Notes: generated by a model not told the origin, from the sequence alone. A stretch of DNA of 64,000 nucleotides from Macrostomum lignano (GCA_002269645.1 NIVC01000126.1:930001-994000); one strand, 5' to 3'. Shown: positions 24,361-59,394, counted from the stretch's first letter. Made by a program: numbers and translations.

Positions 24361-27338
24361 TGTAAGAGCCGTTCCCCTGAATTACCGGCAGCAAGTGGAC
24401 AAGAAAATTAGCGAGATGCGGCGTCACGGGATTATCGAGCCGTCTTGCAGTCCATGGGCGAGTAATCTGCTTGTGGTGCGAAAGAAAAACAACGAGATTC
24501 GAATCTGCACCGACTGGAGAGCCCTCAACTCGTGCACCGTGAAGGACGCCTACCCGCTGCCTCCGCTGTCTGCTGCGCTGGACGCGCTCACTGGAAGCAG
24601 TTGGTTCAGCACTCTTGACCTCCGCCAAGGGTTCCTGCAGGTTGAGCTGCGAGAGCAAGACCGGGAGAAGACCGCTTTCTACACCACGCAGGGCCTGATG
24701 CAGTACAGGAAACTCGGGTTCGGCCTCTGCAACGCCCCGGCAACCTTTCAGCGCCTGATGGACCTAACGATGGCCGGCCTGAACTGGACAGAGGTGCTCA
24801 CGTACATGGACGATCTGATTCTGTTTAGTCAGACCTTCGAGAAGCATGCGGAAACACTGGAACAGGTCCTGGGAAGACTGCAGTCTGCTGGCCTCAAATT
24901 GAACAAACGCAAGAGCTACTTCTGCTTCCAGGAGGTTGAGTACCTAGGACACAAAATCTCGGCAGAAGGCATTCGACCAACTCAGGACAAGGTCAGCGCT
25001 ATCCAGTCCATCCCGATACCCGAATGCGCTGAGGATGTTCGCCGGCTTGTCGGCATGCTGGGCTTCTACCGGCGTTTCGTTCCGCACTTCGCCAGCATCG
25101 CTAATCCGCTTCATCAGGCGACTCAGAAGAGTCGACAGTTTCAATGGACAACTCAGTGCGATGACGCTCTGCGGAAGCTGAAGTCAGCTCTGTCGACACC
25201 ACCCGTACTGAAGCTGCCTGACTACTCCAAGGGATTCCGGTTGTGCTGTGACAGCAGCGGAGTGGCCATCGCCGGCGTCCTGAGCCAGCTCCACGAAGAT
25301 GCCGAGTGTCCGGTAGCCTACGCGTCGAGAGTCCTGAACAAAGCGGAGCGCAATTATTCGACTACCCACAGAGAGTTTCTTGCGGTGGTCTGGGCGATGA
25401 AGCATTTCCGGAACTACTTGGCGTTCGCTGGCGAAATTCTCGTCTTCACCGACCACAAGCCGTTGCAAGGACTGCTCAACACGAAGGAGCCAGAAGGCCG
25501 GCTAGCCAGATGGATTACGTTTCTGCAGGAGATCAACTTCAAGCTGCTCTTCAGACCTGGTCGCGAAAACGTGGTTGCGGACGCACTGAGCCGAGCAGCG
25601 GCGACCCGGCTGCACCCTGCCTGGTCGGACAACGACATCCGTGTAGCGCAGGCTGACGACCCAGTGCTAGCGGCGGCTCGACAAGTGCTCCTCGGACAAA
25701 GGCCAAGACGTGGCAAGGCTGCAGATGACGCAGAACACCTGGTGAGGACAGAGAAGCTGGACCTTGGTGAAGATGGCGTCCTCAAGAAGAGTGGCCAACC
25801 CGTCATCCCGCGGCAGCTTCGCCAGGACCTGCTGCAGCTGCTGCACGACGATCCTGTAAGCGGGCACCTCGGAACCGAAAGGACGCTGGCCAGAGTCGTC
25901 AGCAGAGCTTGGTGGCCCGGCCTAAAGGACGACGTCCAGCACTGGGTGAGCAGCTGCGAAGTGTGTCAGCGTCGCAAGGTACCGCATCAGCACCAGAGGG
26001 CACCGCTGCAGATCAACACCGTGCCATCAGCTCCTTGGGAGATGGTGCAGGTGGACATCAAAGGGCCCCTCCCAGAGACTGAAGCCGGCCTCAGGTACAT
26101 CATCTGCTTCACGGACGTGTTTTCCAAGTGGGTTGAGGCGACCGCGGTGTCCAACATTGAGGCCCGGACGGTTGCGGATGCGCTGCTAAGGAGTGTCGTT
26201 CTTCGCCACGGAGCGCCCGAAGTCATCCACTCCGATCAGGGTCGTCAGTTTGAAAGTGACATCTTCCAAGAGCTGTGCCGCCTGCTGGATATTCGCAAGA
26301 CAAGAACGACACCCTTCCATCCCAGCGGCAACCCTGCAGTCGAGCGGTTCAACCGAACATTAGGCGACATGCTGGCGGCGTACTGCATGGAACAGCAGAA
26401 CAAATGGGCGGACTTCCTGCCGTACGTCATCTGGGCGTACAACTCTTCAGCACACTGCACCACCAAGAGGTCGCCCTACGCAGTGCTTCACGGATGTGAC
26501 CCCAGGATCCCGGCAGAGCTCAGTTTACCTGCAGGCGGCGAAAGGAGGCTCGTCACGGACACGCTGGCAGACGCTCGCACCGGCTTGCAGCTCGTGCGGC
26601 AGCGCCTGCAGTCGACACAGCGGTCACGGAAGCAGCAGTACGACAAGTGCCAGCACTTCACGCCGATCCAAGTCGGGCAGCTGGTGATGCTCAGCAACCC
26701 GGCGGTGTTGAAGGGCCAGTCCAAGGCTCTCCGTCGGCGGTGGCTGGGACCGTACCGCGTGCTCGAGAGGCTGGGCCCCGTCACCTACCGGATCTCAAAA
26801 CCCGCCGGCCGGAGACGAAGCACGGTGGTGCATCACGACCGGCTCAAGCTGTTCGTGCGCAGGCGGCCGCAGCCCGCTTCCTGGCAGTCCGCCCCGACTC
26901 CGCCCGCTGCAGAGGCCGGCCGACCGCCCAGCCCGGCTGTCGATCCGCGGCTGACCTGGACGGACTTGCTGGATGAGCCGACCGCAGTCGGCCCTCGGCG
27001 TTCTGCAAGGACTCGAAGACCGCCTGATTTTTATGCTGCGCAAAACTAGTTTACTGGTTCATTTTTTTGCTATTCGTGCATTTTTAATTCTCATGGTTTT
27101 ACTGCCTCTTTTGTCTTTTCGCAGTTTTTTATTATCCTCAATTTAGGGAAGGAGTGATGTAAGAGGCGTGAATGTTTTCGCTGTTGTGTGGTTGTTATTG
27201 AGTCGGAGTTATTCATCTGCAAATAATCGCGATGTACATTGATTGATGTACATTGCAAATATATAAATCGTTGCGCGTGGCTTTAGCCACTTCGTGTGTT
27301 TTTGGTCTCGCTTAACTCTCGCCTTCTCTCAGTTTACA
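24361..27338 (+). mobile_element. Ty3/Gypsy LTR retrotransposon with a 5' internal deletion (no gag or protease; 5' LTR reduced to 8 bp)
   Basis: PPT-like AGGGAAGGAGTGA precedes a 3' LTR TGTAAGAG...TTACA (27158-27338). TGTAAGAG also occurs at 24361-24368. AAAT flanks both ends. Confidence 0.88.
24395..27049 (+). CDS. pol: Gypsy pol: RT, RNase H, H2C2 zinc finger, integrase core and GPY/F tail (884 aa, no stops)
   Basis: SPWASNLLVV, RICTDWRALN, LDLRQGF, FGLCNAPATFQ, YMDD, CDSSGVAI, TDHKPL, H..GH..C..C, VDIKGP, SDQGRQF, VERFNRTL, WLGPYRV; RT-RH-IN order. Confidence 0.97.
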   Translation: MDKKISEMRRHGIIEPSCSPWASNLLVVRKKNNEIRICTDWRALNSCTVKDAYPLPPLSAALDALTGSSWFSTLDLRQGFLQVELREQDREKTAFYTTQGLMQYRKLGFGLCNAPATFQRLMDLTMAGLNWTEVLTYMDDLILFSQTFEKHAETLEQVLGRLQSAGLKLNKRKSYFCFQEVEYLGHKISAEGIRPTQDKVSAIQSIPIPECAEDVRRLVGMLGFYRRFVPHFASIANPLHQATQKSRQFQWTTQCDDALRKLKSALSTPPVLKLPDYSKGFRLCCDSSGVAIAGVLSQLHEDAECPVAYASRVLNKAERNYSTTHREFLAVVWAMKHFRNYLAFAGEILVFTDHKPLQGLLNTKEPEGRLARWITFLQEINFKLLFRPGRENVVADALSRAAATRLHPAWSDNDIRVAQADDPVLAAARQVLLGQRPRRGKAADDAEHLVRTEKLDLGEDGVLKKSGQPVIPRQLRQDLLQLLHDDPVSGHLGTERTLARVVSRAWWPGLKDDVQHWVSSCEVCQRRKVPHQHQRAPLQINTVPSAPWEMVQVDIKGPLPETEAGLRYIICFTDVFSKWVEATAVSNIEARTVADALLRSVVLRHGAPEVIHSDQGRQFESDIFQELCRLLDIRKTRTTPFHPSGNPAVERFNRTLGDMLAAYCMEQQNKWADFLPYVIWAYNSSAHCTTKRSPYAVLHGCDPRIPAELSLPAGGERRLVTDTLADARTGLQLVRQRLQSTQRSRKQQYDKCQHFTPIQVGQLVMLSNPAVLKGQSKALRRRWLGPYRVLERLGPVTYRISKPAGRRRSTVVHHDRLKLFVRRRPQPASWQSAPTPPAAEAGRPPSPAVDPRLTWTDLLDEPTAVGPRRSARTRRPPDFYAAQN

Positions 27339-28192: not shown

Positions 28193-31100
28193 ATGCAAAC
28201 CATCGATTTTCACGTGCGTAGCGACGACCAGAGAAATCGTCGTCAAGTTGTTCAGGCGCGCCGTCAGGAGCAGTCGCAGCAGCTGTTTAGAAGTAGAGAA
28301 GTGGGCAGCCGGAATGACCAGGTGCTGGAGACAGCGATATCCAGTACCAGTTCGAAGAGTCGGCTCCGAGAGCTCACGACGTTGAGGGCGGAGCAACCTT
28401 TGGCACGAGAGTCTGCAGTGGCCGACGCTCCATCGTCGCCAACCTCACCGGCGTCGATGTCGCCTCAGGCTCGGCCAAGCATTGACAGTCAGCAGGGAAC
28501 TTCGCTGCCTGTGACTGATAGTTTGCTCAAGCGACTAATCGACGAGTCGAAGTTTGACCGGCTGATTGAGCACCTCAAGCTGCGCGGCACCTATTCCAGC
28601 ATAGTTGGAAACCGCACTGTTGGCGACTTGGCCGCCGAGAAAGGCAACTGTCTGTTGCTGGACAGGCTGCACGAGAGCTTGGCCTACGATTTTGATCGGA
28701 GGAACAAAGACGGCTTGGTGCCGTTCCACTACGCCGTTAAGAAGCGCCAGCTTGACGCGCTCACAAAGCTAATAGAACTGGGAGCCTCAGCGGATTTGCC
28801 ACTGCCGTCACTGTCCGGCAGAGGACAGTCGGACACTCCGCTGCACCAGGCCTGCTCAATCGCTGATACAAAACTGCTTAACACTCTGCTGGGTAAGTGT
28901 TGTTTAGTAATCTTTCAAGTTTCCGTTCCAGAAGCGACACTTACTTGAACTCTGATTTATTACGCTCATACTGTACCTACTGTACCGGTATATATGTTTA
29001 AAAGAACATAATATACTAGTATTTTGAATCAGTACTCTTACTCTGTACCTGTACAGTGGCTATTTCCCAGCATTATAATCGGAAATTTCTACAACTTCCC
29101 GCTTGTCCATTTCCCAGATCATTGCAGAGCCAGTCTAAACGTTGTTGACGCGCAGGGCAACTCGCCTCTGCACAGAGCGTGCCTTGAAGACTCGCTAGTT
29201 GTTGTGAAAATACTGATGCCGCACATCACGGAACCGGTGCTGAATATGCAAGGATTTGAAGGCAAAACCGCCCTGCACATTGCTGTGCTCAACCAGAACC
29301 GAGAGATTGTACGGCTGCTCCTCACCGCCAAGTGCACGGGTGCTTTGGTCGACATACCAGCTGACAATGGTAAGACGGTTATCGACATCATTCTGGAGCT
29401 CAACAACCACATGATGCTCAACGACTTCATTTACTACTATACTGTGATCAAAATGAAAGGCGTGAGAGCCCAGTGTTTTAAGGAGTTGTCGTTCAATCAG
29501 CAGTTTGGCCAGTATTTGGACTTTCTAGCAAACGTGGACAACGAGTTTCGAGCCTGCATCATCAACATGAAGGAGATTAGCGCGGACGAGAGGCAACTCC
29601 TGTGTGAAAAGTTGCGAGACGACGATCGGATTGACTTGATCGAGTTCACCGAGGTCATCCTGCAGCTGCTGCAGACTGAAGACATTCACGACATCATTCA
29701 CGAGGCTGATAACGATGATGTGCTCATTAAAATTGTTGAAAACATCGTGCACTACGTACTGTTCAGAGAGGATGCTATGCTCCTAGAACGGATCATGACG
29801 TGCGGGGTGCTCTGGTCTGAAGTTTCCGTATTGATAGAGAAAAACCTCGACTCGCTCTATCTGCAAGCCCCCGAGAGAGAGGTGAACGGTATTATTAAGC
29901 ATTTTCGGACGAACTTTGTTGAAAATGAGGCTGTTGATCATAAAAAATTGGCCGAATATTATGGCGACCTGTTGTCCTGCTACAGGCTGAAGGGAGACTG
30001 CGAAGAAACAAACCCGGACAGTCCGTACATGCGAAATCCTTTTCGAACTCTGCCCGTGTGGTCGATTCTGTCCGGCCGATTGTGCCTTACTGAACTGCTA
30101 TTGCAGCAGGAAAAATTCGATGTTGTACCGCTATCGCTGTTCTGCGCCGGCGTGCTGCGAACTTTCCCGGCTAACCAGGACATTGTGGTTGATGAGGAGG
30201 ACGTCGAAGACATGGCGCTGACCTGCGAAAGATTTGCTCGCAAAGTGGTAGAGAAGGCGTACACAATTGACACCTCCTACAACCGGACTGTCAGTCTGGA
30301 TTACTTACTGCGGCCGATGGAATCTTATGGCGGCGTCTCGTGCGTTCGGCTGGCGGCTTCCAACGGTTGCGCAGTGTTCCTACAGAGCGAGCTGTGCCAA
30401 CACGCTCTGGACAAGTTGTGGTTCGATTCCTTGCTCTACCTGAGTCCGGTCACTCGAGAAGTCGTGATCTGGATGGGCGCCATTCCGATGAACATCTTTG
30501 TGCCCATTCTGCTGTCCTACTTCGATAGCAAAGAGGTCGTAGCGAGACAGAAGCACGAAGAGCGGCCGTACATCAGCGACCGTCAGTCAGCTCAGAAGTC
30601 GGCCAAGTTCCACTTGCTGCCCTTAGAATCGGTCGAACCGGACAAAACTGCCGACAGCACCGACGGAGAGAATCTGATTAGGCCAAGCGTTGAGTTGAAG
30701 CAGTTTGGCAATTATTTACCGCACAGGAGGCGGTCGAGCCTGATGAGACCATCAGGTGCAGAAAATGACAACCAAGTTCCTCTTGTGGACTTTGGGCACG
30801 ATGAGCAAGACTGCCAGTCTCAGAGCACGCTAAACTATTCGGAATCAAACTATTTTTGCCACTTCAGCAAACTTTTAATCAATTTCTATCGTACGCCGGG
30901 TGTGAAGTTTCGGTACCACGTCGCTTCGCATATTGTACTGCTCGGACTGATGTCCTACTTCCTGCTCGTAGATTTCAAATATGAAATCTCTAACATTGAA
31001 ATTATTGTCTACCTAATTCTTGGCGGCTTGTTTCTGGAAGAGATGGGCGAAATGGTGCAGTACATCGTCCATAATGACATTCAAAGCTACTTCAATAGTA

Positions 31101-32798
31101 AGTGGAACGTGATTGATTTGTCAGCCCTGCTGTCAGGTGCGACGGGTTTTGTGATTCGCCTGGTAGAGATCAAGCACAACTCCGAGTGGTCCGACATGAT
31201 GCGAGACTTCGAGGACTCGGCTTGGTATTCAGCCAGAATTTTTCTTAGTAAGAAAATCAATCATTGTTTGACTCTTAACTATAGACACAATCTACCATTG
31301 TCTACCTCCAAAACTATAGACACAATCTACCATTGTCTACCTCCAAAACCATAGACACAATCTACCATTGTCTACCTCCAAAACTATAGACACAATCTAC
31401 CATTGTCTACCTCCAAAACTATAGACACAATCTACCATTGTCTACCTCCAAAATCATAGACACAATCTACCATTGTCTACCTCCAAAACTATAGACACAA
31501 TCTACCATTTTCTATATCCAAAAGCATAGACTTAATCTACCATTGTCTGACTACAGAACCATAGACACAATCTACCATTGTTAAACTCAAAAAACCATTA
31601 AACACAATCTACCAATGTCTACCTCCACAAAGATGAATTGATTTCACTACTGATAAAAAACGTTCTATTTATAAGTAGTATATAAAGGAAACTGCTAATT
31701 GTTTCTTGCAGGCATCTGCTGCACCCTCTACTGGATTCGGCTGCTGTACATTTCGAATGTGCTGGAGAATCTCGGGCCCAAGCTAAGAATGATCGCCCAG
31801 ATGATCACCAAGGATCTGCTGCCATTTCTATTGATTCTGTTCATCTTCATCCTGGGATTCGGGTGCTGATGCACAGCTTGCTGTACCCCAACGGGTACAA
31901 GGCCTGGAACTCGGCTCGTATCAGCAGTACTCACGTGCTGCTGGGCATGCTCAAGATCTGCTTCTACAGCATGGTTGGGGAGTACAGTCTGGATACCATT
32001 ATTGGGGACGATTCGTGCGAAAATGTGTACCAAAATTATACTCTAAATGAAGGCAACTGTCCGCACAAAATCGGACGGTGAGTTGGTGGCACTGGATATT
32101 TAGAATTTTCAGAGTTTAGTTTAAGGATTATTTACCCAATATTCTAAAATCCTGCTAACAGGTACCTGGTGCCCTACCTGATCCTGCCTCTCTACGTGAT
32201 CGTCACGGAGATCTTGCTGCTGAATCTCATCATCGCCATGTTCAGCAAGACAATCGAGACCATCGACTCGCGCAGCACCGATCTGTGGCAGTTCGAACGC
32301 CACGATCTCGTTATGGAGTTCCAGACTCGTTCGAGTCTTCCGCCGCCACTCAACGTGTTCGATCTATTCTACAAGCTGCTCAGGCTTCTCCGGAGACTGA
32401 CTCAGCATTCCAGATGCGTCCTCTGCAGCTGTGTCAACGAAGTCGAGACCGTTTTTAGCCGCCGCGTCGTGCTGCAGTTTCTGCTGTTCCAAGCGCTCAG
32501 CCTGCGCAATAACCGGCTGAGGCTGATGCAGCAGAGTCTGCCGAAACAGGAGACCGAAGCCGAGAAGATGCTGATGAAGATGAGAAAAATTGTCGAGTCC
32601 GAGTTGACAAAGCTGAAGCAGCAACCGGCGGGTAGCGACCGCGGCAGCGAAGGTGACAGCGACAGCGACAGCGACCCGCCGAGAGCCATCACAGCCAACA
32701 CTCTGTTAGGCAATTTGCCGAGGACAAGGCTGCCAAGGCCCAGTCTCGCCCAGACCAGATGGAGACAGGCTCTGCGACTGCAGACCATGTGGCGCTAG
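28193..32798 (+). CDS. Ankyrin-repeat TRPM-like cation channel, copy 1. Exons 28193-28892, 29118-31247, 31712-32077, 32162-32798; apparent 1-nt frameshift at ~31861
   Basis: About 6 ankyrin-like repeats (VPFHYAV, TPLHQAC, SPLHRAC, TALHIAV); MHR4-like YGGVSCVRLAA..LCQHALDKLWF; KFRYH, KWNVID, NLGPKL, NLIIAMFS; WQFERHDLVMEF..LPPP. Exon 3 is 366 nt versus 367 nt in copy 2. Confidence 0.85.
31279..31620. repeat. 35-bp minisatellite in intron 2 of TRP copy 1
   Basis: (CTATAGACACAATCTACCATTGTCTACCTCCAAAA)n. Confidence 0.92.
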
Positions 32799-32945
32799 CA
32801 ACCCTTCTTATTGTTGCTCTTCGAGTTTTTTTAGTGGCCAATTAATTTTTGTTTGCAAAAATGTCTGTATTTTTCTGCTGTGCCAATTCTCAAATTTTAA
32901 CACTTGGCAGCGTGATACTTCCTTAACCCATTTTTTAGCTGTTTC

Positions 32946-34362
32946 CATAGGCGTAGGAACGTTTCAAAAAGTGGGGGGGGCAGGTTCAGTGGCGGATTTG
33001 GGGGGTGCGCACAGGGCGCACGCCCCTGTCGAGTTAGATTTTTTATATATGGAAAATGCACATTATCATGTACCGATTATTTTCAGAATCCGTCTTGTCA
33101 GCACTCATTTTATAAAGCGCCGCAGGTGCTCATTTTAGCGCCACAGACACTCATTTTAGCGCCACAGACACTCATTTTAGCGCCACAGACACTCATTTTA
33201 GCGCCACAGACACTCATTTTAGCGCCACAGACACTCATTTTAGCGCCACAGACACTCATTTTAGCACCGCAGGCACTCATTTTAGCACCGCGGGCACTCA
33301 TTTTAGCGCCGCAGGTGCTCATTTTAGCGCCGCAGGCACTCATTTTAGCGCCGCAGGCACTCATTTTAGCGCCGCAGGCACTCATTTTAGCACCACAGGC
33401 ACTCATTTTAGCGCCGCAGGCACTCATTTTAGCGCCGCAGGCACTCATTTTAGCGCCACAGGCACTCATTTAAGCACCGCAGGCACTCATTTTAGCGCCG
33501 CAGGCACTCATTTTAGCGCCACAGACACTCATTTTAGCGCCACAGACACTCATTTTAGCACCACAGACACTCATTTTAGCGCCGCAGGCACTCATTTAAG
33601 CACCGCAGGCACTCATTTTAGCGCCGCAGGCACTCATTTTAGCGCCGCAGGCACTCATTTTAGCGCCACAGACACTCATATTAGCGCCACAGACACTCAT
33701 TTTAGCGCCGCAGGCACTCATTTTAGCACCACAGGCACTCATTTTAGCGCCGCAGGCACTCATTTTAGCGCCGCAGGCACTCATTTTAGCGCCACAGGCA
33801 CTCATTTAAGCACCGCAGGCACTCATTTTAGCGCCGCAGGCACTCATTTTAGCGCCACAGACACTCATTTTAGCGCCACAGACACTCATTTTAGCACCAC
33901 AGACACTCATTTTAGCGCCGCAGGCACTCATTTTAGCACCACAGGCACTCATTTTAGCGCCGCAGGCACTCATTTTAGCGCCGCAGGCACTCATTTTAGC
34001 GCCGCAGGCACTCATTTTAGCGTCACAGGCACTCATTTAAGCACCGCAGGCACTCATTTTAGCGCCACAGACACTCATTTTAGCACCGCAGGCACTCATT
34101 TTAGCGCCGCAGGCACTCATTTAAGCACCGCAGGCACTCATTTTAGCGCCGCAGGCACTCATTTTAGCGCCGCAGGCACTCATTTTAGCGCCGCAGGCAC
34201 TCATTTTAGCGCCGCAGGTGCTATGTTTTGTCGCCCTGCAGCAAAATGCATTCATGCAAAGCAGCAAAAAACAAAAATAAACAAAAAGTCTACATTTTAC
34301 GTTTAAACATTTTAAAAAGTGGGGGGCCATAGCCCCACTGTCCCCCCGTTCCTACGCTTGTA
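32946..34362. mobile_element. hAT-type non-autonomous element carrying an internal minisatellite
   Basis: Imperfect TIRs CATAGGCGTAGGAAC / GTTCCTACGCTTGTA; 8-bp TSD GCTGTTTC at 32938-32945 and 34363-34370. Confidence 0.8.
33115..34220. repeat. 21-bp minisatellite (GCACTCATTTTAGCGCCGCAG)n
   Basis: Tandem repeat; produces the spurious MSACGAK ORFs. Confidence 0.96.
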
Positions 34363-35539
34363 GCTGTTTCAGAAGTAATCCAGTTTGCCGTTTTACCTGC
34401 TCATTTTTTACTAGAAATTTTTGGCTACACAAATTACTTTTTACACTTTTTGCTTACTAAAAAAGCGGTTTTCTTTGTTAAATTGATCAATTTCTAATTT
34501 TGCCAAACTGAATGAATTAATTTTCCGACGCTATTTAATCGCGAACGCGTTTACTTTTAACCAATATTATTCAAGGTAAAAATTGTCCGACTCCTCTCGC
34601 TTGTTGAATTTAACTACTTGGCGATGCCTGCACACTGGGGTAGATTTGGCGTAATTTCTTTCCGGCAAAATGCAAACAATTTTAATCAGCATACTCAGAC
34701 TCTAGACTGTAGAGAAATACCTGAATTGAGTATATGTAAAGTTCTGAGGTTCGCCAACTGACCGGGTTCATCTTTGTATAGATAGCAGACTTAGACTTGG
34801 ACTAATTGATGCTTTTTTACCTGAAGTTGACTAAAGAAACCCCGCACGTGGCCCGGAAGATGAAAAGCTTCAGTCCAAAGCAACCTCTGCTGAATGCAAT
34901 CCCTTGATCATCCGACGGAACAGGTAAAACAATTGACAAAATCCCTAATGCAGTACATTCTGCTGCACAGCCTGTCACCCCAATGCCATAAAACCCTAGA
35001 CTGGCCTAGAGGCACCAATTAAATAGTCCCGTTTCTCGTCCCCTTGGCGTTTTTCTCTAGCCCTGTGCGGTAGGGAGCGGGGGATAGAGGCGGACAGAGG
35101 TGCATGGGAGTGTACGCGCTGGAGGCGGCGACTGACTCACTGGGTGTAAGCAGTAAAGACTGCCTTGCAGAGAGAGAGGGCAAGGCGGAGAGGTTGGGCT
35201 GCCCCGGCCACTCCTTCCTCTGCAGAAATACACGAAAAAGCCTTATTTAACGATCCAGCTGCTTTCTGTACGAAGCAAAGCCGTGTGAACTCTTGTGCGC
35301 AGCGCATGTAATTCTTTCTTATCGCGTCGCGAGCTGCGACCGACTCGTTCGTGTTAATGAACGTCTGCTGCATGCACTACTGACTCTGAGTGAGCCATAA
35401 AACAGTTCTTTATCAGCAGCTACTGTAGCACTGCATGGTCACTGGATCACTGGCAGTTAGCTACAACAAGTGTTTAAAAACAGTTAGTCAATATGCCAAC
35501 TAACACACAGTTGATTGTTTAATTTAACTGACATCCGGC

Positions 35540-38500
35540 ATGTCTGGGTTCAACATCAGCAGCGAGCAGCAACGGTTTCAGTACTCGCGCCAGGTGTCTC
35601 GAGAGCGCCACGATTTTGACCAACCGAGTCGACGAACTCAACTGAATGTCCTCCACGGAGGCCAAAATTTTTACCCGGTCGGTTCAGCGCCGTTGCAATG
35701 GCGAATCCGACGGTTTGAAAACTTTTCGACGGCTGGAGGTGGCGCCGGGGCGCCTTTGTCGTCGTCTAGGCCGACTTCTCGAGTCCCGGCAGCGCCTTTT
35801 CCGGCTGGTGCCGCGCCGTCATCCGCAGCGGTAGGAAGAAACTTTCCGAGTTTCCGGTCGAACCGATCGACCGCGGCAACAACCAGCGATTTTGATCCCA
35901 TCGTGTTGGACGCTTACAAGGCGAACCGACTGGAGCAGCTCAAGCGGCTTCTAACCATCAAAGGCGTGTATACGGAAGTCAACAGGTGCAAAACAGTAGC
36001 CGATCTAGCTGCGGAAGATGGCAAGTTCGAGGTGCTGGATCTGCTGAAGGAATTGTCGGTCGACTTCAACAGGCGAAACGCTGAAGGCATGGTGCCGCTG
36101 CACTACGCCTTGAAGAAGCGTCACTATCGAACTATTCGATACCTGCACAGTTTGGGTGCCAGTCCAGACATTCCTCTGCCGTCGTCCATAAGCGGACGGG
36201 GACTGTCCGACTATCCGCTGCACGTGGCCTGCGCTAGTGCGGACAAGAAAATGCTGGACACATTGCTTGGTATGTGCAGATTCGCAGCGCTCCTTTTGTG
36301 GGGGCAAAGCTTTCCCGCTTCCCCTTAGGGAGGCCATAAATTTCAAGGACTCCTAATGGCGATCGCCACTTCCAGTATATGTCTCGCAAGCTTGCATACA
36401 TATAAAAATATAAATTTTCAATCTTAAAATGACTTACTAAATGGTTTGTTTGAAACCGCAGACTACTGCGGCGCCGAGCTGCACGTGCTGGACGCTCAGG
36501 GCAACACGCCGCTGCACCGCGCCTGCCTCGAGGACTCGCTCGTTGCGGTAAAACGCCTGGCGCCGCATCTCAGCAGCGAGGTGCTCAACGTGCGCGGTCA
36601 CGAAGGCAAAACAGCGCTGCACATTGCTGTGCTGAATCAGAATCGACAGATAGTAGACTTGCTATTGAGCAAGGGAACGCTGGTTGACGTGCCAGCGGAC
36701 AGCGGCAAGACAGTCATTGACCTCATCCTGCAGCTCAACAATCCGATGCTGCTTAACGATTTCGCTCGATTCTACTCAATCCGCATGACCGAGGGCGTCA
36801 CGGCGAGAAACCTGATGGCACTGTCGCACGAGAAGCACTTCGAAAAGTACCTCGAATTTCTCTCTCACGTAGACAACGAATTCAACGAGTGCACAATGGA
36901 GATCAAGGACATCAGCGAGGTTGAAAAGGAAACTCTGTGCGCCAAACTGCAGCACGACGATCGAATCGACCTCATGGAGTTCAAGGAGGTCATCGTCCAG
37001 CTGTTGCAAACTGAGGATATTCATTACTTGATCATGGAGGATGATCGCGATGTGCTGGTCAAGATCGTAGAGAACATTGTGCACTACGTCCTGTTCAGAG
37101 AGGACGCTGTGATGCTCGAGCGAATTATGTACTGCGGAGTGCTCTGGTCGAAGGTGTCGCTATTGATCGAGGATCATCTCGACTCGCTGTACATCCAAGC
37201 TCCAGAGAGAGAAGTCAACGGTATCGTCATGCACTTCAAATCCCGATTCGTTGAGCAAAACAGAGTTCGGCACGACAAACTATCTAAGTACTACGGGAGC
37301 GAGCTGTCTTGCTACAACCTGCAGCCGTACTACCTGGGATTCAATCCCAACATTCAGTACATGCGTCACCCGATGACCACCCTGCCAGTCTGGTCAGTTC
37401 TGTCCGGCCGGCTGTCCCTCACCGAGCTGCTACTTCGCCAGGAGAAGTTCGACGTCGTTCCGCTGTCCCTGTTCTGCGCCGCCCTGCTGAGAACTTTCCC
37501 AATGAATCAGGAACTTGTCGTGGAAGAGGAAGAAATCGAGGCTTTAGCTCTGACCTGCGAGAAATTTGCTCGAAAAGTTGTCGAAAAGGTCAACTCAATC
37601 GATACTTCGTACAATCGCTCTGTCAGTGTCGACTACCTGCTGAGACCACTAGAGTCCTACGGCGGCGTCTCCTGCGTGAAGCTGGCCGCCTCCAACGAGT
37701 GCTCCAGGTTCCTGCAGAGCGAGCTGTGCCAGCGCGCCCTCGACAAGATGTGGTTCCGATCGCTGCTGCACATGAACCCCATCCTGCGCGAGATTATCAT
37801 TTGGATGGGCGCCATTCCGCTCAATTTCCTGGTGCCGCTGGTGCTGCTCTACTACGACGAGAAGGAGATGCGCACCAGGCGTCGCCACGAAGAGCGCAGC
37901 TTCGTCCAGGAGGATGAGACGACGCCGATTTACGAAAAATTCCATTTGCTGCCGAAACTGCCGCTGCCAGCGGACCAGTCCGCTGACAGTCTGGAAGACC
38001 AGATCACTCGGCGACGCGGCTCCAACGCTCATTCGCTGGGAACTCAAGCTGGGCAGAAGCTCGCCAAGGAGGCCAAGCAGCAAGCTCACTCGTCCTCCTC
38101 TCTGCACAAGGAGAATCAGCAGAAAAAGGAGGCGCCAATAGAGGAGATCGAGTTCCGACAGATGGCCCGTCCGAACTCGAAGGTGTCGGAGAAGTCGGAC
38201 GCCTCCTCGCTGCTGCACAAGGCTGACGAACAGGATGAGCACTCGATTTTGAGCTCGATCGGCACCCGAGCGCTCAGACGGTTCCGGCGATTCTTCCAGC
38301 TGATCTCGGAGTTTTACGATACCCCGGCCGTGAAGTTCCGCTACCACGTGGCTTCGCACGTGCTCCTGGTGGCTCTGCTGTCCTATCTGCTGCTGATGGA
38401 CTTCCAGTACGAGCTGAGCATCAAGGAGATCATTGTGTACGCCATTCTCTCCGGCATGCTGCTAGAAGAGGTTGGCGAGATAGCCCAATACACGGAGCAC

Positions 38501-41500
38501 GACGACATCAAGTCGTACTTCAGAAGCAAATGGAACATCATCGACATCACAGCTCTGACCTGTGGGGTGGTCGGCTTCTCGATTCGCATCAGCGAGATCA
38601 AATACTCGCAGGAGTGGAGCGACATGATGCGGGACTTTGAGGACAAGGCCTGGTACACAGCGAGGATCAGCCTGAGTGAGTTCTTCGGTACTGTTTTGAG
38701 AATGTCTCTATCCAATTTCTCTAGAGTGTCTCTTGAATCTTTATAATGTCTCTATAATGTCTCAATCTTGTATCTGTAGAATGCCTGTAGAATGTCTCTA
38801 GAATGTCTCTATCGTGCATCTGTAGAATGTCTTTATAATGTCTCTAGAATGTCTCTATCGTGCATCTGTAGAATGTCTTTATAATGTCTCTAGAATGTCT
38901 ATAGTATATCTGTGGAATGTCTTTATAATGTCTCTAGAATGTCTCTATAGTATATCTATAGAATGTCATTATAATGTCTGTAGAATGTCTCTATAGTATA
39001 TCTGTAGAATGTCTTTATAACGTCTCTAGAATGTCTCTATCGTGTATCTGTAGAATGTCTTTATAATGTCTCTAGAATGTCTCTATAGTATATCTGTAGA
39101 ATGTCTTTATAATGTCTGTAGAATGTCTCTATCGTATATCTGTGGAATGTCTTTATAATGTCTCTAGAATGTCTCTATAGTATATCTATAGAATGTCATT
39201 ATAATGTCTGTAGAATGTCTCTATAGTATATCTGTAGAATGTCTTTATAATGTCTCTAGAATGTCTCTATAGTATATCTGTGGAATGTCTTTATAATGTC
39301 TCTAGAATGTCTCTATAGTATATCTGTAGAATGTCATTATAATGTCTGTAGAATGTCTCTATCGTGTATCTGTGTAGAATGTCTCTAGAATGTTTAAAAT
39401 ATGTGTAGATTGTCTCTAAAGTGTCTGTAGAATGTTTGTAGAACGTCTGTAGAATGTCTACTAAAAGGCCAATAAAAAATCTTTCTATTCCGCGCAAGGA
39501 GTGTCGTCATTTAAGTTTTTGCTTATTTTTTTGTTGTTCAGCGACCAAAAAGTAGCAAAACTCTTTCTTCTCTTCAAGTGTGGCAGTGTTCTGTAGCAGT
39601 AAAAATGGTAGGAACCCACAGATAGATGATGTAGCAGGAGCTCTTGCAGTTAAGAACTGTTTCGTCTGTCTAACCCTAACTTGGAGTGGAAATGCAGTAC
39701 GCTATGCATTCCAATAGTTCTGGGCATTGGCAAATTTGCATAAATTGCACTAAAGAGCTACTGCATGTGTACTGGTTTCCGGCGGAAGGGTTGCTATGAA
39801 TATGCATATAGATTATAAGAAGCTGCTTCACTGAGAATGCGCAATTGTACATCACGGCTGAATTTGGCATAGCAATAAATTTCGCTGTTCAAATGCATGC
39901 GGAAATCAATCCAGCTATTTACCGCTTTCGTTTTTAAGTGAAAGCCTGTTTGCCGACTTCCCTCAAGAGATTAAAGGACATTTTGGTATTTGGTACTAGG
40001 ATCTTGCTTGGGACAGAGCTTGTATGCATGAGATTATTGGGATTTCAAGCTGTACAAGTGGCGCCAAAAAGTGTCTCAAATAGGTGCCTAAAAGTATCTC
40101 AAAGTGGCGCCTAAAAGTACCTCAAATTGGCGCCTAAAAGTATATCAAATAGGTGCCTAAAAGTATCTCAAATAGGTGCCTAAAAGTGTCTCAAATAGGT
40201 GCCTAAAAGTGTCTCAAATTGGCGCCTAAAAGTATCTCAAATTGGCGCCTAAAAGTATCTCAAATAGGTGGCTAAAAGTATCTCTATTTGGCGCCTAAAA
40301 GTTTCTCAACTTGGCGACTAAAAGTATCTCAAATACGAGCTCGTATATGCCTTAAAGTATCTCTAAAAGGTGCCTAAAAGTACCTCAAAAAGGTGCCTAA
40401 AAGTATCTTAAATAGGGGCGCCTACGAGACGTAAAAGTATCTCAAATAGATGTCTGAAAGTATCTCATATAGGCGCTAAAATCAGAAAATGTCTTCACAT
40501 AGCTACTCAAATTGGACTTCAATCAGTAGTATCTGGTGTAGCGCATTGCTATAATCTTTATTTAACAATAATTGCAGGCATCTGCTGCACCCTGTACTGG
40601 ATCCGGCTGCTGTACATTTCCACAGTGCTGGAGAATCTCGGGCCCAAACTGAAAATGATTGCAAAGATGATCACTAAGGATCTGCTGCCATTTCTATTGA
40701 TTCTGTTCATCTTCATCCTGGGATTCGGAGTGCTTATGCACAGCTTGCTCTATCCAAACGGATACAGGGCCTGGAATTATGGTCAATTGAACAAGGTTCA
40801 CGTGCTGCTGGGCATGCTCAAGATCTGCTTCTACAGCATGGTTGGGGAGTACAGTCTGGATACCATTATGGGCGACGATTCTTGCGAAATGATCTACGAA
40901 ACGCGGGAGAACAATACCAGCAGTTGTCCGCATCATTTTGGCCGGTGAGTGAGATTCCAGTCATTGTTGGTCCTGCGACTTCCAAAACCCTGGAGAGAGG
41001 AAGGGAATCCCCAGGGTTTTGCCATGGGTCTGAGGGGGAGAGAGAGGAAGGGAATCCCCAAGGTTTTGCCATGGGTCTGAGGGAGAGAGAGGAAGGGAAT
41101 CCCCCAAGGTTTAGCCAGGGGTCTGAGGGAGAGAGAGGAAGGGAATCCCCCAAGGTTTTGCCATGGGTCTGAGGGAGAGAGAGGAAGGGAATCCCCCGGG
41201 GTTTTGCCGTGGGTCTGAGGGGGAGAGAGGGGAAGGGAATCCCCCACGATTTAGCCATGGGTCTGAGGGAGAGAGAGAGGAAGGGAATCCCTCAATGTTT
41301 AGCCATGGGTCTGAGGGAGAGAGAGAGGAAGGGAATCCCCGGGGGTTTAGCCGTGGGTCTGAGGGGGAGGAAGAAAGGGAATCCGCCAGAGTTTAGCCAT
41401 GGGTCTGAGGGGGGAGAGAAGAAGGGAATCTCTAGGATTTAGCCATGGGTCTGAGGGAGAGAGGAAGGGAATCCGAATCCCCAAGCAAAGGTAAGCTCTC

Positions 41501-42351
41501 TGCAGCAAATGTTAATCCCCATTGGACATTAGTACTCTGATTAGACAGAGAGTAATCCTATGTACAAATCTCAACGGAACCACAGGTACCTGGTGCCCTA
41601 TCTGATCCTGCCTCTCTACGTGATCGTCACGGAGATCCTGCTGCTGAATCTCATCGTCGCCATGTTCAGCAAGACAATCGAGACCATCGACTCGCGCAGC
41701 AAAGGTCTCTGGCAGTTCGAACGCCACGATCTAATTGAAGAATTCGAAACTCGGTCCAGCCTGCCGCCGCCCCTGAACGTGTTCGATCTAGTTAGAAAAT
41801 TTTTTCTATTGCTCAAGAGCTACTGCCGCCGAGTGTGCCACAAGAACTGTCGGTGTCGCACCAGACACGCTGGTGGAGGCGGCGGCGGCGGCTCCTTCCG
41901 CCAGAAGCTGGTCACCCAGTTCCTGCTGTTCCAGGCGTTCGGCCTGCGCAAATGTCGCGAAGAGATGATGCGCCAGTGCCTGCCGAAGCAAGAGACCGAG
42001 ACCGACGCTATGCTGGACAAAGTGCGAGACATTGTCGAGGCCGAGGTCAACCGGTTGATCAGCGTCACGGGAATGTCGAGCGCTGAAGGCGATGGCAGCG
42101 AGGGTGCACAGAGCATCGCTGCGGACACTCTGCTGGAGGCCACGCCTCCGCCGCCTCCGCCGCAGAGTCAGTCGAGCAGCAGACCTCCGTTGTTCCCTAC
42201 TGGTACCAAATCGCTCGACTGTCTGGCAGACGATGGCGGCGTCGGTGGAGCTCCCGGCGGTGCCGGATCGGGCGTCGGTGGAGCTCCCGGCGGTGCCGGA
42301 TCGGGCGTCGGTGGCAGACCGAGGGTTCGACTGCGAGAGCTGATCAAGTAG
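35540..42351 (+). CDS. Ankyrin-repeat TRPM-like cation channel, copy 2 (intact). Exons 35540-36269, 36462-38675, 40578-40944, 41586-42351
   Basis: Same domains, intron positions and phases (1,1,2) as copy 1. The TRP domain LWQFERHDLIEEFETRSSLPPP closely resembles TRPM2 IWKFQRHDLIEEY. The frame is continuous. Confidence 0.9.
38700..39455. repeat. Composite AT-rich minisatellite (TAGAATGTCT core) in intron 2 of TRP copy 2
   Basis: Direct tandem repeat. Confidence 0.92.
40066..40480. repeat. 23-bp minisatellite (AAAGTATCTCAAATAGGTGCCTA)n
   Basis: Degenerate tandem repeat. Confidence 0.88.
40990..41480. repeat. ~41-bp minisatellite (GGGAATCCCC..GCCATGGGTCTGAGGGAGAGAGAGGAA)n in intron 3 of TRP copy 2
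   Basis: Direct tandem repeat. Confidence 0.92.
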
Positions 42352-50182: not shown

Positions 50183-53100
50183 TCACGGATTAACAAAGGT
50201 GACAAAGATGTAACGAACACCTTTAGTGACTTCCAGGCCCTCGTGCAGGTGAGTGATCCTACCGGGATGGACAAACGCCCAGCCTAGTCGCGGAGCGATC
50301 ACGGAGCAGTTGTAGCGAGTAAATCTGCAGCCTCCGCCTTCGAAGTCCACGCCAACCTGATTGAGAGCCAGATTGACAGTGTAGTCTGAGGCGTCATGAT
50401 GCGGCCGGAGCTCCTTCTGCTCCTCGGGGTGATAGCGAACAACGAAGTTCATTCGAGCCCAAGGCTTGTCGCTGTAGCCTTGGAATAGTTTTAGCTGGAT
50501 TGGGTGCATGTACTTTACTAGAAAGTGCAGCCAGTGCGCCTCCCAGCCAACTTGGCGCATGTGAATGTCGCGAGTTGGCACATTCTCGTAGCCGCCTTCT
50601 AGCCGGGGATCCGTGTTTGTGCCGTCTGACCATCTGCAAATTGCACTACTGCTGTTAGTAGAAATATAAGCAGAATAACAGTTGCTTTCCCAGAATTTAA
50701 AATCCTTAAATACTAGCAGCTCTTATCCCCAAATTTACAAGTCCTCAGTTCCTATTCTCAATCATAAAAATCCCCAATTCTCCCAGTTCCTATCCTTAAT
50801 CATAAAAATCCCCAATTCTCCCAGTTCCTATCCTCAATCATAAAAATCCCCAATTCTCCCAGTTCCTATCCTCAATCATAAAAATCCCCAATTCTCCCAG
50901 CTCCTATCCTTAATCATCAAAATCCCTAATTATCCCAATTCCTATCCCCAATCATAAAAACCCCAATTCTCCTAGTTCCTATCCCCAATCATCAAAATCC
51001 CTAATTATCCCAATTCCTATCACCAATAATGAATTCCCCAATTTTCCCAGCTCCTATCCCCAATCATAAAAATCCCCAATTATCCCAATTTCTATCCCCG
51101 GTCGTAAAAATCCAATACTCACCTTCCGAACGACTCCATAACGGCAACCAGATCGTGGCAAAACGAAGGCGTAACCAATGGCAACCAAAACACATCCGGG
51201 CAGGGCTGCTCAAAATCCCCCAGCTGAGCATCGTCGGAGGCGAATCGCCAATAATCCGGATGCATGTACTTGTGCTCCCAATCCACCGGATTAGCCCAAA
51301 TCTCCCACAGATCATTGCTAGCGTGCAACCTAGTGGTATTGGAGTTGTCAGTCAGGTGACCGAATGGCAGTGTGTTTAGCACGTGCATAAACACATTTTT
51401 CGATCTAGCAATTGAAGCGAAATCTATGTCGTAGTCGATTCCACTAGCGGCTAATCGTTTGGGATCGAATGCGCCAGCTTTGAGTAGGATTTGAGCAGCT
51501 CGCCTATTGATTAGGTAGGCCGCCGATACGTAAGGCACGTTCCACAGGCCGCGGCGCGCATCGCTGACAATGTCTAAGTAGTCGTCTGATCTGTAAGGGT
51601 GCGGCACTTGCTTAACTTGAGTTGCCGCTATCTGCCCCAATCCTACAAAGACTACAGCCGCTATCTGCCCCAATCCTCCAAAGGCTACAGCCACTATCTG
51701 CCCCAATTCTCCAAGGCTACAGCCGCTACCTGCCCTCTCACCTGGCATAATATCCGTCGGCATTCAGAGCGCCCCAGAAGTTGGACCACAATTTACCGGG
51801 CAGCACTAGCAGTGGCGCAACAATAGACCGATTGACGGCCACCAGCTGAGTCAGAGCATCTCGTCCAGTTAGCTGAGCAATCGGCTCAACAAAGAAGATA
51901 AAATCTGAATCGTACTCATTAACTAACAGCATCTGTCTGGCGGAGACCGGCGAGAAAGCTAAATTATCCGAAGCATTATTCAGCACAATACTGGCATACT
52001 CGTGCACAGGATTGTCAATGAAATCTCTAACGGCTAAATGAACATTTCTAGCCGAGGCCCCCGGTCCCAGATCGATACGAAGATGAATTCGCTGCTTTGG
52101 ATAAGTCTGCTCGGCTAATCTAGCCAATAGCAGGTTGGGAAACGGCGCCGGATCGGTTAGCAACACGCCGACAGTCAGGTAGGGCAGTTCTGATTGGCGC
52201 TGCAACAGTTGAGCCACAGTTGGCGGCGGCATTGGCGGGCAGTGCTGACAGCCCAGACTGTCTGACCAGCCTCTGCCCAGATAGTTTGTTAATCGCCAAA
52301 ATTCTGCTTTAATTGGTCCATTGCCGTGCAGTAGGGCGGGAGAACTACCCGTGACAGTGTTGCGCAGATAGCCTAAGCCGCTGTCGTCCCAGCGTAGCGA
52401 CACCTCGGACAGGGCTCCGTTGAGCGTCTGGAATACTGAGCAGTCGTAGTCTAAGGCCATGCGATGCCGCTGACGCAAGTCCGGGTTGAGGAAGGCACGA
52501 GTCAGGAACAGCTGGTCATCGTCTGAGTCGGTGATTGGGGCATAGTTGAGCAGGCGCCTGCATTGGAACAGGTGGATGAGTGCATAGTGTGCAGGCCTTG
52601 ACGCACTTTACGAGCCCTTGACCATAAACCATGACACTCGCACAATAATATATGCATGACCTTGCAAACACCGACTAACCCTAGACCTACTCACAACCCT
52701 AGACCTACTCACAACCCTAGACCTACTCACAACCCTAGACCTACTCTACTCACAACCCTAGACCTACTCACAACCCTGGACCTACTCACAACCCTAGACC
52801 TACTCACAACCCTAGATCTACTCACAACCCTAGACCTACTCACAACCCTAGACCTACTCACAACCCTAGACCTACTCTACTCACAACCCTAGACCTACTC
52901 ACAACCCTGGACCTACTCACAACCCTAGACCTACTCACAACCCTAGACCTACTCACAACCCTAGACCTACTCACAACCCTAGATCTACTCACAACCCTAG
53001 ACCTACTCACAGTCACAACCCTAGACCTAATAAACCAAAACACCAGACCTAATAAACCAAAACACCAGACCTAATAAACCACAACCTTAGACCTAATAAA

Positions 53101-53965
53101 CCACAACACCAGACCTAATAAACCAAAAAACTAGACCTAATAAACCACAACACCAGACCTAATAACCCACAACCTTAGACCTAATAAACCACAATCTTAG
53201 ACCAAATAATCCACAACCCTATAGACCTAATAAGCCACAACCTTATAGACCCTAATAACTCACAACCCTATAGACCTAATAACCCACAACCATATAGACC
53301 TAATAATCCACAACCCTATAGACCTAATAACCCACAACCCTAGACTCAAAGAGCCACATTATGTGTCTTTAAAAGTAAGAATCTCAGTGCCATTTGACAT
53401 CTTGTGTCGAAGTTTAGACCCACACATCCTTCAAGACTCAAATCAAGTCTCACCTGAGCTCCCCAGCCTTGCCCATATACCCGCCAGAATTTAAATAGGC
53501 TGTCTTCCGGCCAGCGGGAGGTTTGGGATACTTGTCGGCCAGGCTCTGGTCGGGCCAGCAGAACCGTTCGGCAGAGATTAGTACTCCGGCTCCGCTAGCC
53601 TCGAATGCACTTCGAATAGCCGCCTGGCCAGCTAGAAACACAGCGTCGTAGGCGTCGCTAAACAGCACCAGTTGATCGTCTGGCACGTCAGCCAGCGCCC
53701 GGCGCATTAGCAGAATCTTCTGACCGCCGCCGGCGCCGCGAGACACGTCGCCGCCGAGCCAATCGGAGCCGAGACCCAACGGCTCCGGAGTTGGCAAGCC
53801 GCGCAGCTTAGCCGAGGCCAGAAACGCGGCCAGAGCGTCATTGGTCTCCGTGGCAACCGTTAGAATACGGAGTTGAGAATTGGCTCCAGATACTTTCTCG
53901 TAGTAAACGGAGCTGATGCAAGCAATCAATAATAGTGACAGTGTGAGATGCATAGCAACTGGCAT
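50183..53965 (-). CDS. PLOD: Procollagen lysyl hydroxylase/glycosyltransferase. Exons 53454-53965, 51742-52557, 51123-51590, 50183-50633 (748 aa)
   Basis: Signal peptide; [88 protein letters not shown]; total length 2247 nt in frame. Confidence 0.97.
50745..51100. repeat. ~39-bp minisatellite in PLOD intron 3
   Basis: (AATCATAAAAATCCCCAATTCTCCCAGTTCCTATCCTC)-like tandem repeat. Confidence 0.88.
52673..53345. repeat. 18-bp minisatellite (ACAACCCTAGACCTACTC)n and derived variants in PLOD intron 1
   Basis: Direct tandem repeat. Confidence 0.92.
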
Positions 53966-54134
53966 GCATGATTGACAGGTAAATCAGGATATAATAAGGT
54001 CAAGTAGCTAACTCGGCGCACAGATACCATAATAACAAAATATATGTATAAGTAGAGCGTATATTCTGTTTTAAGTAGTTAATCTGCACAGTATCACTAA
54101 AATTTAATGTGGCAGCTAAAGTTTTAATTTCTTT

Positions 54135-59308: not shown

Positions 59309-59394
59309 GCTTCCGGTGCTGTGACTTTCGGTTGATATAAACAAATGCCTTTTTGTGCTTTTTATTGGGCCGTGGCAGAAATTAAATTGAGATT

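Follow-up and report, generated by a model that had tools for sequence, protein, structure and literature searches.

Canonical channels of the TRPM family and their TRPS relatives are regarded as ankyrin-free. An earlier note on the DNA described here had started from that view, which agrees with the survey of Himmel et al. (2020, PMC7306681), where flatworms were not sampled. In the flatworm Macrostomum lignano, two paralogous genes of the same structure (genes A and B) lie in tandem on the plus strand, at positions 28193-42351 of a 64,000-nucleotide window (the whole stretch of DNA analysed, NIVC01000126.1:930001-994000), and encode N-terminal ankyrin repeats followed by a channel of TRPM appearance. 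The question that this locus raises is whether the two genes represent a possibly undescribed subfamily, as the earlier note proposed, or belong to a known one. An existing family with the same architecture has been published. The Schistosoma mansoni channel TRPM_MCLZ (Smp_333650), formerly called 'TRPM7-like', is activated by the anthelmintic meclonazepam and carries multiple N-terminal ankyrin-like repeats (Park et al. 2024, PMC10788528). It does not have the MHR1/2-SLOG region (Sprague et al. 2024, PMC11731825), and the name 'TRPM-like' has been proposed for its group, on account notably of the ankyrin repeat domains at the N-terminus (Rohr et al. 2026, PMC12861061). Trematodes, cestodes and monogeneans have orthologues of it. 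We consider it probable (roughly 0.8) that the genes of the window are Macrostomum co-orthologues or paralogues of TRPM_MCLZ, that is, members of this flatworm 'TRPM-like' family, because their channel domains group with parasite sequences in a neighbour-joining (NJ) tree, their N-termini give a collinear profile match, and they share pocket residues. The architecture is already published for flatworms; what is new here is its expansion in Macrostomum and the TRPM-like pore of these members, which is modest information.

The features that had been listed for this tract were all found there. Exon models were obtained by tblastx of the two halves of the locus against each other, together with canonical GT-AG sites, and give the following features.

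28193-32798 (+): gene A, four coding exons, from paralogue comparison and splice sites
28193-28892 (+): gene A exon 1, N-terminus (disordered) with ankyrin repeats 1-3; its splice donor is GTAAGT, in phase 1
29118-31247 (+): gene A exon 2, ankyrin repeats 4-6, MHR3/4-like helical domain, disordered linker, and transmembrane helix S1 to the first half of S4
about 29879-30370 (+): gene A, Pfam match to PF25508 within exon 2
31712-32077 (+): gene A exon 3, S4 (second half) and S5, then the pore helix, the filter and the two-Cys loop; the frame breaks within it
31855-31871 (+): gene A, site of a 1-bp deletion in a G-run (GGATTCGG-GTGCTGATG), from comparison with gene B
32162-32798 (+): gene A exon 4, S6, TRP helix (WQFERHDLVMEF...LPPP), C-terminal helices and stop
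35540-42351 (+): gene B, four coding exons, from paralogue comparison and splice sites
35540-36269 (+): gene B exon 1, disordered N-terminus (residues 1-116) and ankyrin repeats 1-3
35888-36751 (+): gene B ankyrin-repeat domain, residues 117-340, from Pfam and AlphaFold2; spans intron 1
36270-36461 (+): gene B intron 1, inside the span of the ankyrin-repeat domain
36462-38675 (+): gene B exon 2, ankyrin repeats 4-6, helical domain, linker, and S1 to the first half of S4
36752-37831 (+): gene B MHR3/4-like all-helical linker domain, residues 341-700
37208-37714 (+): gene B, Pfam match to PF25508, residues 493-661
37832-38266 (+): gene B low-complexity disordered linker, residues 701-845; predicted local distance difference test (pLDDT) below 50
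38324-38599 (+): gene B S1-S3 of the voltage-sensor-like domain, with S1 H-x3-H (YHVASH), and with S2 EE..E and S3 WNIID aligned to nvTRPM2 E893/Q896/N918/D921
40578-40944 (+): gene B exon 3, S4 (WIRLLY) and S5, then the pore helix, the MVGEY filter and the two-Cys loop
41586-42351 (+): gene B exon 4, S6, TRP helix, C-terminal helices, low-complexity tail and stop
41674-41751 (+): gene B TRP helix (WQFERHDLIEEF...LPPP)

Gene B is an unbroken open reading frame (ORF) of 1358 codons with canonical splice sites. Its translation is 100% identical, over the full length, to the NCBI 'hypothetical protein BOX15_Mlig019746g1' of M. lignano, so that the same exon structure was reached by independent annotation. 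The proteins of genes A and B are 57% identical overall and 59-79% identical in the folded domains, across which the ratio of non-synonymous to synonymous divergence (dN/dS) is 0.08-0.34; purifying selection has acted between the two genes. The coding parts of S5, pore, S6 and TRP helix (31712-32380 and 40578-41804) share 83-86% DNA identity with a dS of 0.46, whereas outside this part the identity is 67-69% and dS 1.2-3, which suggests that gene conversion may have taken place between the tandem copies.

The first step concerns the N-terminal half. Pfam ankyrin families match both genes with E-values from 1e-16 to 1e-24. A first AlphaFold2 run on residues 117-724 of gene B, with an alignment of four sequences, was confident in the ankyrin part only. 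Residues 117-337 are modelled as an ankyrin solenoid (pLDDT 80-94) that resembles gankyrin and the ankyrin domain of Bcl-3 (TM 0.7, root-mean-square deviation 2.6-4.5 Å), while the helical part reached a pLDDT of 30-70 and a fold search of this model gave ankyrin proteins only. Since the solenoid has seven helix pairs, the repeats would number 6-7, close to the six or so counted in the earlier note. Ankyrin repeats 4-6 and the PF25508 region share one unbroken exon-2 ORF in each gene (29024-31354 in gene A and 36446-38746 in gene B), and the junction between the ankyrin and melastatin parts is therefore independent of splicing. An origin of the ankyrin exons in another gene, as an artefact of the gene model, was rejected on the basis of this single ORF in both genes and of the identical NCBI model.

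In the position of SLOG (MHR1/2) both genes have the ankyrin domain. Neither SLOG (PF18139, LSDAT_euk) nor NUDIX gave a Pfam match at E<=1 in either gene, the latter in agreement with the absence of a NUDT9H tail that had been claimed. A local SLOG hidden Markov model (HMM) matched 72 canonical TRPMs and no member of the ankyrin clade. Regarding the proposal that ankyrins had replaced MHR1/2, the arrangement itself stands, with SLOG absent and an ankyrin domain in its place; replacement as an event is only plausible. Among the Macrostomum members of the clade the ankyrin domains share 32-60% identity and score 96-249 bits, versus at most 78 bits for generic ankyrins. This specific relationship implies that the fusion is older than the Macrostomum expansion.

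The second step concerns the rest of the protein. The MHR3/4-like helical region reported earlier corresponds to PF25508 (the 'TRPM2-like domain', MHR3/4 region), which is matched above the gathering score in both genes (E 3e-8 to 1e-11), and Pfam Ion_trans is matched as well. Confident hhalign blocks connect the helical domain of the ankyrin clade with canonical TRPM MHR3/4. When gene B was compared with the PDB by phmmer, the best 60 matches were all TRPM channels (E 2e-37 to 4e-21), with a second aligned block in MHR4. A second AlphaFold2 run on residues 336-1240 of gene B used an alignment of 40 sequences (mean pLDDT 79, predicted TM score 0.77) and gave an all-helical domain (pLDDT 79-96 for residues 336-730), a disordered stretch of 110 residues, six transmembrane helices together with a pore helix, then the TRP helix and further helices C-terminal to it. 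In a Foldseek search of the PDB with this model the top 50 chains were all TRPM (TMq 0.45-0.57 over 830-990 columns), including nvTRPM2, TRPM4, the choanoflagellate TRPM2 chanzyme, TRPM3, TRPM5, TRPM8 and TRPM7. The alignment behind the second model included TRPMs, so that the Foldseek result is corroboration and the phmmer result is the independent one. The six transmembrane helices, the two-Cys pore loop and the TRP domain of the earlier description are thus recovered in the gene models, the alignment and the AlphaFold2 model, and each motif quoted at that time is there (LFCA..LL, ESYGGVSCV, W.FERHDL.EEF..R..LPPP and two Cys following the filter).

The TRP helix of gene B, WQFERHDLIEEFETRSSLPPPLN, aligns to that of nvTRPM2; its box 1 is a variant of WKFQR (K to Q and Q to E), and the proline-rich box 2 is present. 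The nvTRPM2 residues E893, Q896, N918 and D921, which we take to coordinate Ca2+, are E, E, N and D in gene B, i.e. three are identical and the change of Q896 to E is conservative. Gene B has in common with canonical TRPMs (the Nematostella TRPM2-like channel 6co7, TRPM8, TRPM4 and TRPM5) the MHR3/4 domain (PF25508), the S1-S6 fold, the nvTRPM2 residues of the voltage-sensor-like domain, a GE-type filter, a pore loop with two Cys, an LPPP box in the TRP helix, and the C-terminal helices. It differs from them in having neither SLOG/MHR1/2 nor a NUDT9H or kinase tail, in its ankyrin domain of 6-7 repeats, and in the disordered insert of 145 residues before S1. TRPN/NOMPC, TRPA, TRPC and TRPV channels also have N-terminal ankyrins followed by a six-helix TRP channel and a TRP helix. 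However, in the window genes the domain between ankyrins and S1 is the TRPM-specific MHR3/4, and the channel is far closer to TRPM: in clade-profile scores TRPNs reach 60-84 bits, versus 129-254 bits for SLOG-bearing TRPMs. Membership of TRPN, TRPA, TRPC or TRPV was discarded on the basis of the 60 sequence matches and 50 fold matches, all of them TRPM, and of these far lower TRPN scores. TRPS (soromelastatin) channels, which have SLOG and Nudix domains and are ankyrin-free according to the 2020 survey, are unlike the window genes, which have ankyrins and neither of those domains. Sequence and model comparisons support that the channel half of both genes is TRPM-type and not of the TRPA, TRPC, TRPN or TRPV type; PDB, Foldseek and profile scores all agree with the earlier assignment, and no grouping with TRPC, TRPA or TRPN was found.

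The ankyrin-free part of gene B served as query in an exhaustive HMMER search, and it was this search that revealed the relatives of the two genes; word-indexed searches, with this query or with a profile of the clade S1-TRP region, gave almost nothing of use. The search returned 1728 relatives. The best 150 of them were classified by Pfam, by a consensus-ankyrin query and by the SLOG HMM, and their names were taken from their clusters. Among these 150, the closest relatives all have ankyrins and no SLOG, and canonical SLOG-bearing TRPMs come after them. The ankyrin-bearing set includes at least ten M. lignano loci (Mlig030565, 023207, 012389, 033956/026745, 022043/007691, 004154, 011337, 000356 and others) and, in parasites, SLOG-less proteins from Opisthorchis, Dicrocoelium, Fasciolopsis and Schistocephalus, the last two being automatically named 'TRPM7'. 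Every named ankyrin-bearing, SLOG-less relative comes from a flatworm. An additional ankyrin-TRPM-like relative (P0129) is a single intron-free ORF of 3.2 kb in a transcript-like Logan contig (DRR639838, 1298-4516), and has Y/Y in place of the S1 histidines.

An NJ tree of the S1-TRP region was built from 128 sequences and 295 columns, with Kimura distances, 200 bootstraps and a TRPN outgroup; 104 of the sequences were SLOG-type TRPMs, and none was a named TRPS or S. mansoni Smp_333650. The Macrostomum ankyrin clade was recovered in 200/200 replicates, the parasite clade in 177/200 and the union of both in 120/200, and genes A and B are each other's nearest relatives (200/200). SLOG is missing from every member of the union. 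An hhalign comparison of the Macrostomum clade's N-terminal cytosolic region with that of the parasite clade gave a probability of 100% and an E-value of 4.7e-45 over 648 collinear columns. A confidence of at least 5 was reached in 395 of the 648 columns, which cover the ankyrin and the helical parts, each aligned to its counterpart. Against canonical TRPM N-termini the E-value was 5e-17, and the confident blocks were almost all in the MHR3/4-like helical region. Both clades have H-x3-H in S1, where the canonical TRPMs displayed have N, T or S in the first position and, in all but one, Y in the second. Also common to both clades are E868 in S2, R943 in S4 and R1120 in the TRP helix.

The parasite matches are identified as TRPM_MCLZ orthologues by their pocket residues, by the variants at the S4 site, by an exon duplication and by the old 'TRPM7' name. 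The published TRPM_MCLZ residues H827/H831/Y864/E868/R943/H946/Y1117/R1120/T1121 align one-to-one with H845/H849/Y882/E886/R961/Y964/Y1131/R1134/T1135 of the Dicrocoelium protein (P0135), in which the residues of S1 to S4 are spaced identically and the TRP residues come four residues closer. The S4 pocket site is Y in the plagiorchiid sequences and F in the cestode one, in agreement with the publications. The Opisthorchis viverrini protein (P0126/P0275) has two complete tandem channel domains, which correspond to the published duplication of trematode TRPM_MCLZ into alternative exons 3a/3b, fused by the gene model. The window genes share with TRPM_MCLZ the N-terminal ankyrins in the place of MHR1/2-SLOG, the absence of NUDT9H, the collinear N-terminus and the grouping of channel domains. 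The S1-TRP identity between Macrostomum and the parasite orthologues is 28-32%, TRP box 1 is WQFER in Macrostomum and WLAERY in the parasites, and the at least ten diverged loci of Macrostomum compare with a single gene in the parasites. The sequences of the Macrostomum proteins are intermediate, with canonical TRPMs on one side and the drug target of the parasites on the other.

Several points weigh against this placement. The Macrostomum and parasite clades are joined with a moderate NJ bootstrap of 60%, by a distance method, and the orthology of the parasite proteins comes from published residue numbers and not from the S. mansoni sequence itself. The nine pocket positions are H, H, M, E, R, Y, F, R and S in gene B, five of them identical to TRPM_MCLZ, and the changes are Y864 to M, H946 to Y, Y1117 to F and T1121 to S; the S4 residue Y is also that of TRPM_MCLZ orthologues of low sensitivity. 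The filter is MVGEY in Macrostomum, as in canonical TRPMs, versus IFEVS in the parasites. The window genes have four coding exons, with introns within S4 and before S6, whereas the parasite genes have three and the whole channel lies in exon 3. Finally, gene A may be a pseudogene. Because positions Y864, H946, Y1117 and T1121 are altered, meclonazepam sensitivity would not be expected in gene B, and the filter and pocket differences together imply that pharmacology and permeation may differ from those of the parasite channel.

A more far-reaching account, which we regard as rather unlikely, would make the flatworm clade (the Macrostomum expansion plus TRPM_MCLZ) a distinct TRP subfamily that arose by a swap of ankyrins for SLOG in the stem lineage. 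Here TRPMs with both ankyrins and SLOG would be a surviving intermediate, and the Macrostomum members, with their canonical TRPM pore and TRP box, would keep the ancestral state; in its stronger variant the clade predates the acquisition of SLOG and is a further animal TRP family. Such ANK-SLOG TRPMs exist in flatworms (Mlig003066, or P0141, and the 'TRPM2' of Clonorchis sinensis, or P0153). They also have Pfam-significant ankyrins at the extreme N-terminus, but they keep SLOG and a full PF25508 match, and are placed among SLOG-TRPMs in the NJ tree. As an intermediate they are suggestive, and neither ankyrin similarity nor the tree supports that role. A close sister relationship between them and the clade was likewise dismissed as unsupported, since their ankyrins are no closer to gene B than generic ones and the tree separates them. 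The layout of P0141 and P0153 (ankyrins, SLOG, MHR3/4 and channel) is absent from general TRPM surveys.

The clade could also be an old, separate TRP lineage that kept ancestral ankyrins and never gained SLOG, i.e. a further family sister to TRPM (and TRPS), which seems improbable to us. In the TRPN-rooted NJ tree the ankyrin clade is indeed sister to all 104 sampled SLOG-type TRPMs, a passage of PMC13143021 citing Burroughs 2015 reports degenerate ankyrin repeats in TRPM MHR3/4, and two canonical TRPMs (P0168 and P0201) gave ankyrin matches in MHR3. However, monophyly of the SLOG group is found in only 37/200 replicates, and long-branch attraction to the outgroup is likely. All the named members of the clade are flatworms, and SLOG has been reported in choanoflagellate, cnidarian and other animal TRPMs, so that an ancient origin would require many losses. 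For these reasons of distribution, a secondary change from SLOG to ankyrins in the flatworm stem is the simpler reading.

It is very improbable that the window genes are an undescribed, Macrostomum-specific chimera that arose when an ankyrin gene fused, independently of any known family, to a TRPM channel. In its favour, the genes are annotated only as hypothetical proteins, in BLAST gene B is no nearer to the ankyrins of the parasite orthologues than to generic ones, and a literature search found no report of TRPM_MCLZ-like genes in free-living flatworms. The papers on TRPM_MCLZ (PMC10788528, PMC11731825 and PMC12861061) deal with parasitic species only, a 2026 survey of TRPM evolution in Molecular Biology and Evolution sampled no flatworms, and TRPM_PZQ of M. 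lignano has already been studied. Against an independent fusion, the whole N-terminus is collinear with that of the parasite orthologues, the channel domains group with theirs, and the S1 H-x3-H motif is shared with them and absent from the canonical TRPMs displayed; in addition, the architecture had already been published.

The state of gene A has to be considered separately, since the earlier note had overlooked a frameshift in it. In the assembled sequence a 1-bp deletion at 31862/31863, within S5, breaks the frame of gene A (GGATTCGG-GTG, versus GGATTCGGAGTG in gene B). The identical deletion was seen in assembly GCA_002269645.1 (contig NIVC01001714.1), at the end of which there are two further G-run indels within that same gene A exon; the three sites are at about 647, 734 and 889 in L001, the sequence compared. 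Between the two assemblies the exons of gene B differ at 1 of the 4077 nucleotides of coding sequence, with no indels and an identical translation. Gene A is otherwise intact: its splice sites are canonical, no stop is found in the 275 downstream codons when the frame is restored, and dN/dS downstream of the deletion is 0.34. Either the gene was inactivated very recently or the deletion is a homopolymer sequencing error. That the whole locus is decaying, both copies being non-functional remnants whose conserved features are historical, is hardly credible, since the frameshift of gene A in two assemblies, the retroelement and many minisatellites around the genes, and the invaded introns stand against the clean ORF of gene B, the dN/dS values well below 1 in all folded domains, and a gene A that is sound but for a single base.

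For the preferred reading, members of the TRPM_MCLZ family, the following working model can be proposed from TRPM structures, the nvTRPM2 alignment and the published function of TRPM_MCLZ. The protein would consist, in this order, of about 115 disordered residues, 6-7 ankyrin repeats, the MHR3/4-type domain, a disordered linker, the six-helix TRP channel, the TRP helix and C-terminal helices. By homology it would form a tetrameric, non-selective cation channel, probably permeable to Ca2+; the GE filter of gene B resembles that of divalent-permeable TRPMs. [quoted passage not shown] Cytosolic Ca2+ is a probable co-factor, since the four nvTRPM2 positions are kept as described above. Gating by ADP-ribose would not be expected because neither SLOG nor NUDT9H is present, and the ankyrin domain would more likely be a module for coupling or for interaction with other proteins.

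Only two TRP channels are validated drug targets in schistosomes, one of them being TRPM_MCLZ, and M. lignano is a free-living, transgenic-ready flatworm with expanded relatives of it. These relatives could be a tractable system for the role of the ankyrin head, for gating in vivo and for the loss of SLOG. The locus calls for a correction to the general description of the TRPM lineage as ankyrin-free, and reveals no new kind of channel.

The surrounding sequence is eukaryotic, minisatellite-rich DNA with a Ty3/gypsy pol ORF. This 884-residue ORF lies at 24395-27049 (+), about 1.1 kb upstream of the start of gene A, and comprises reverse transcriptase, RNase H, integrase zinc-binding and core, and Tf2-type SH3 domains; a simple repeat search around it found no long terminal repeats and only a minisatellite. 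Dense minisatellites occupy 33116-34218, 31277-31627, 38738-39393, 40060-40416, 40993-41474 and many other places. They include a 21-bp unit repeated 52 times between genes A and B, and 35-bp and 46-bp arrays in the introns of both. Their copy numbers differ between the two assemblies, and many spurious long ORFs arise from the arrays. A 686-residue ORF at 16336-18396 (+) has no Pfam match. On the minus strand, at about 50700-54000, there are exons of a PLOD-type procollagen-lysine hydroxylase/glycosyltransferase (PF25342, GT_PLOD; ORFs 51738-52478 and 53450-53965), and the same neighbour is annotated in the older contig, with a 585-residue product that has GT_PLOD and 2OG-FeII_Oxy domains. 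A 240-residue ORF at 58622-59344 (-) contains a Myb/SANT-like DNA-binding domain and is possibly transposon-derived.

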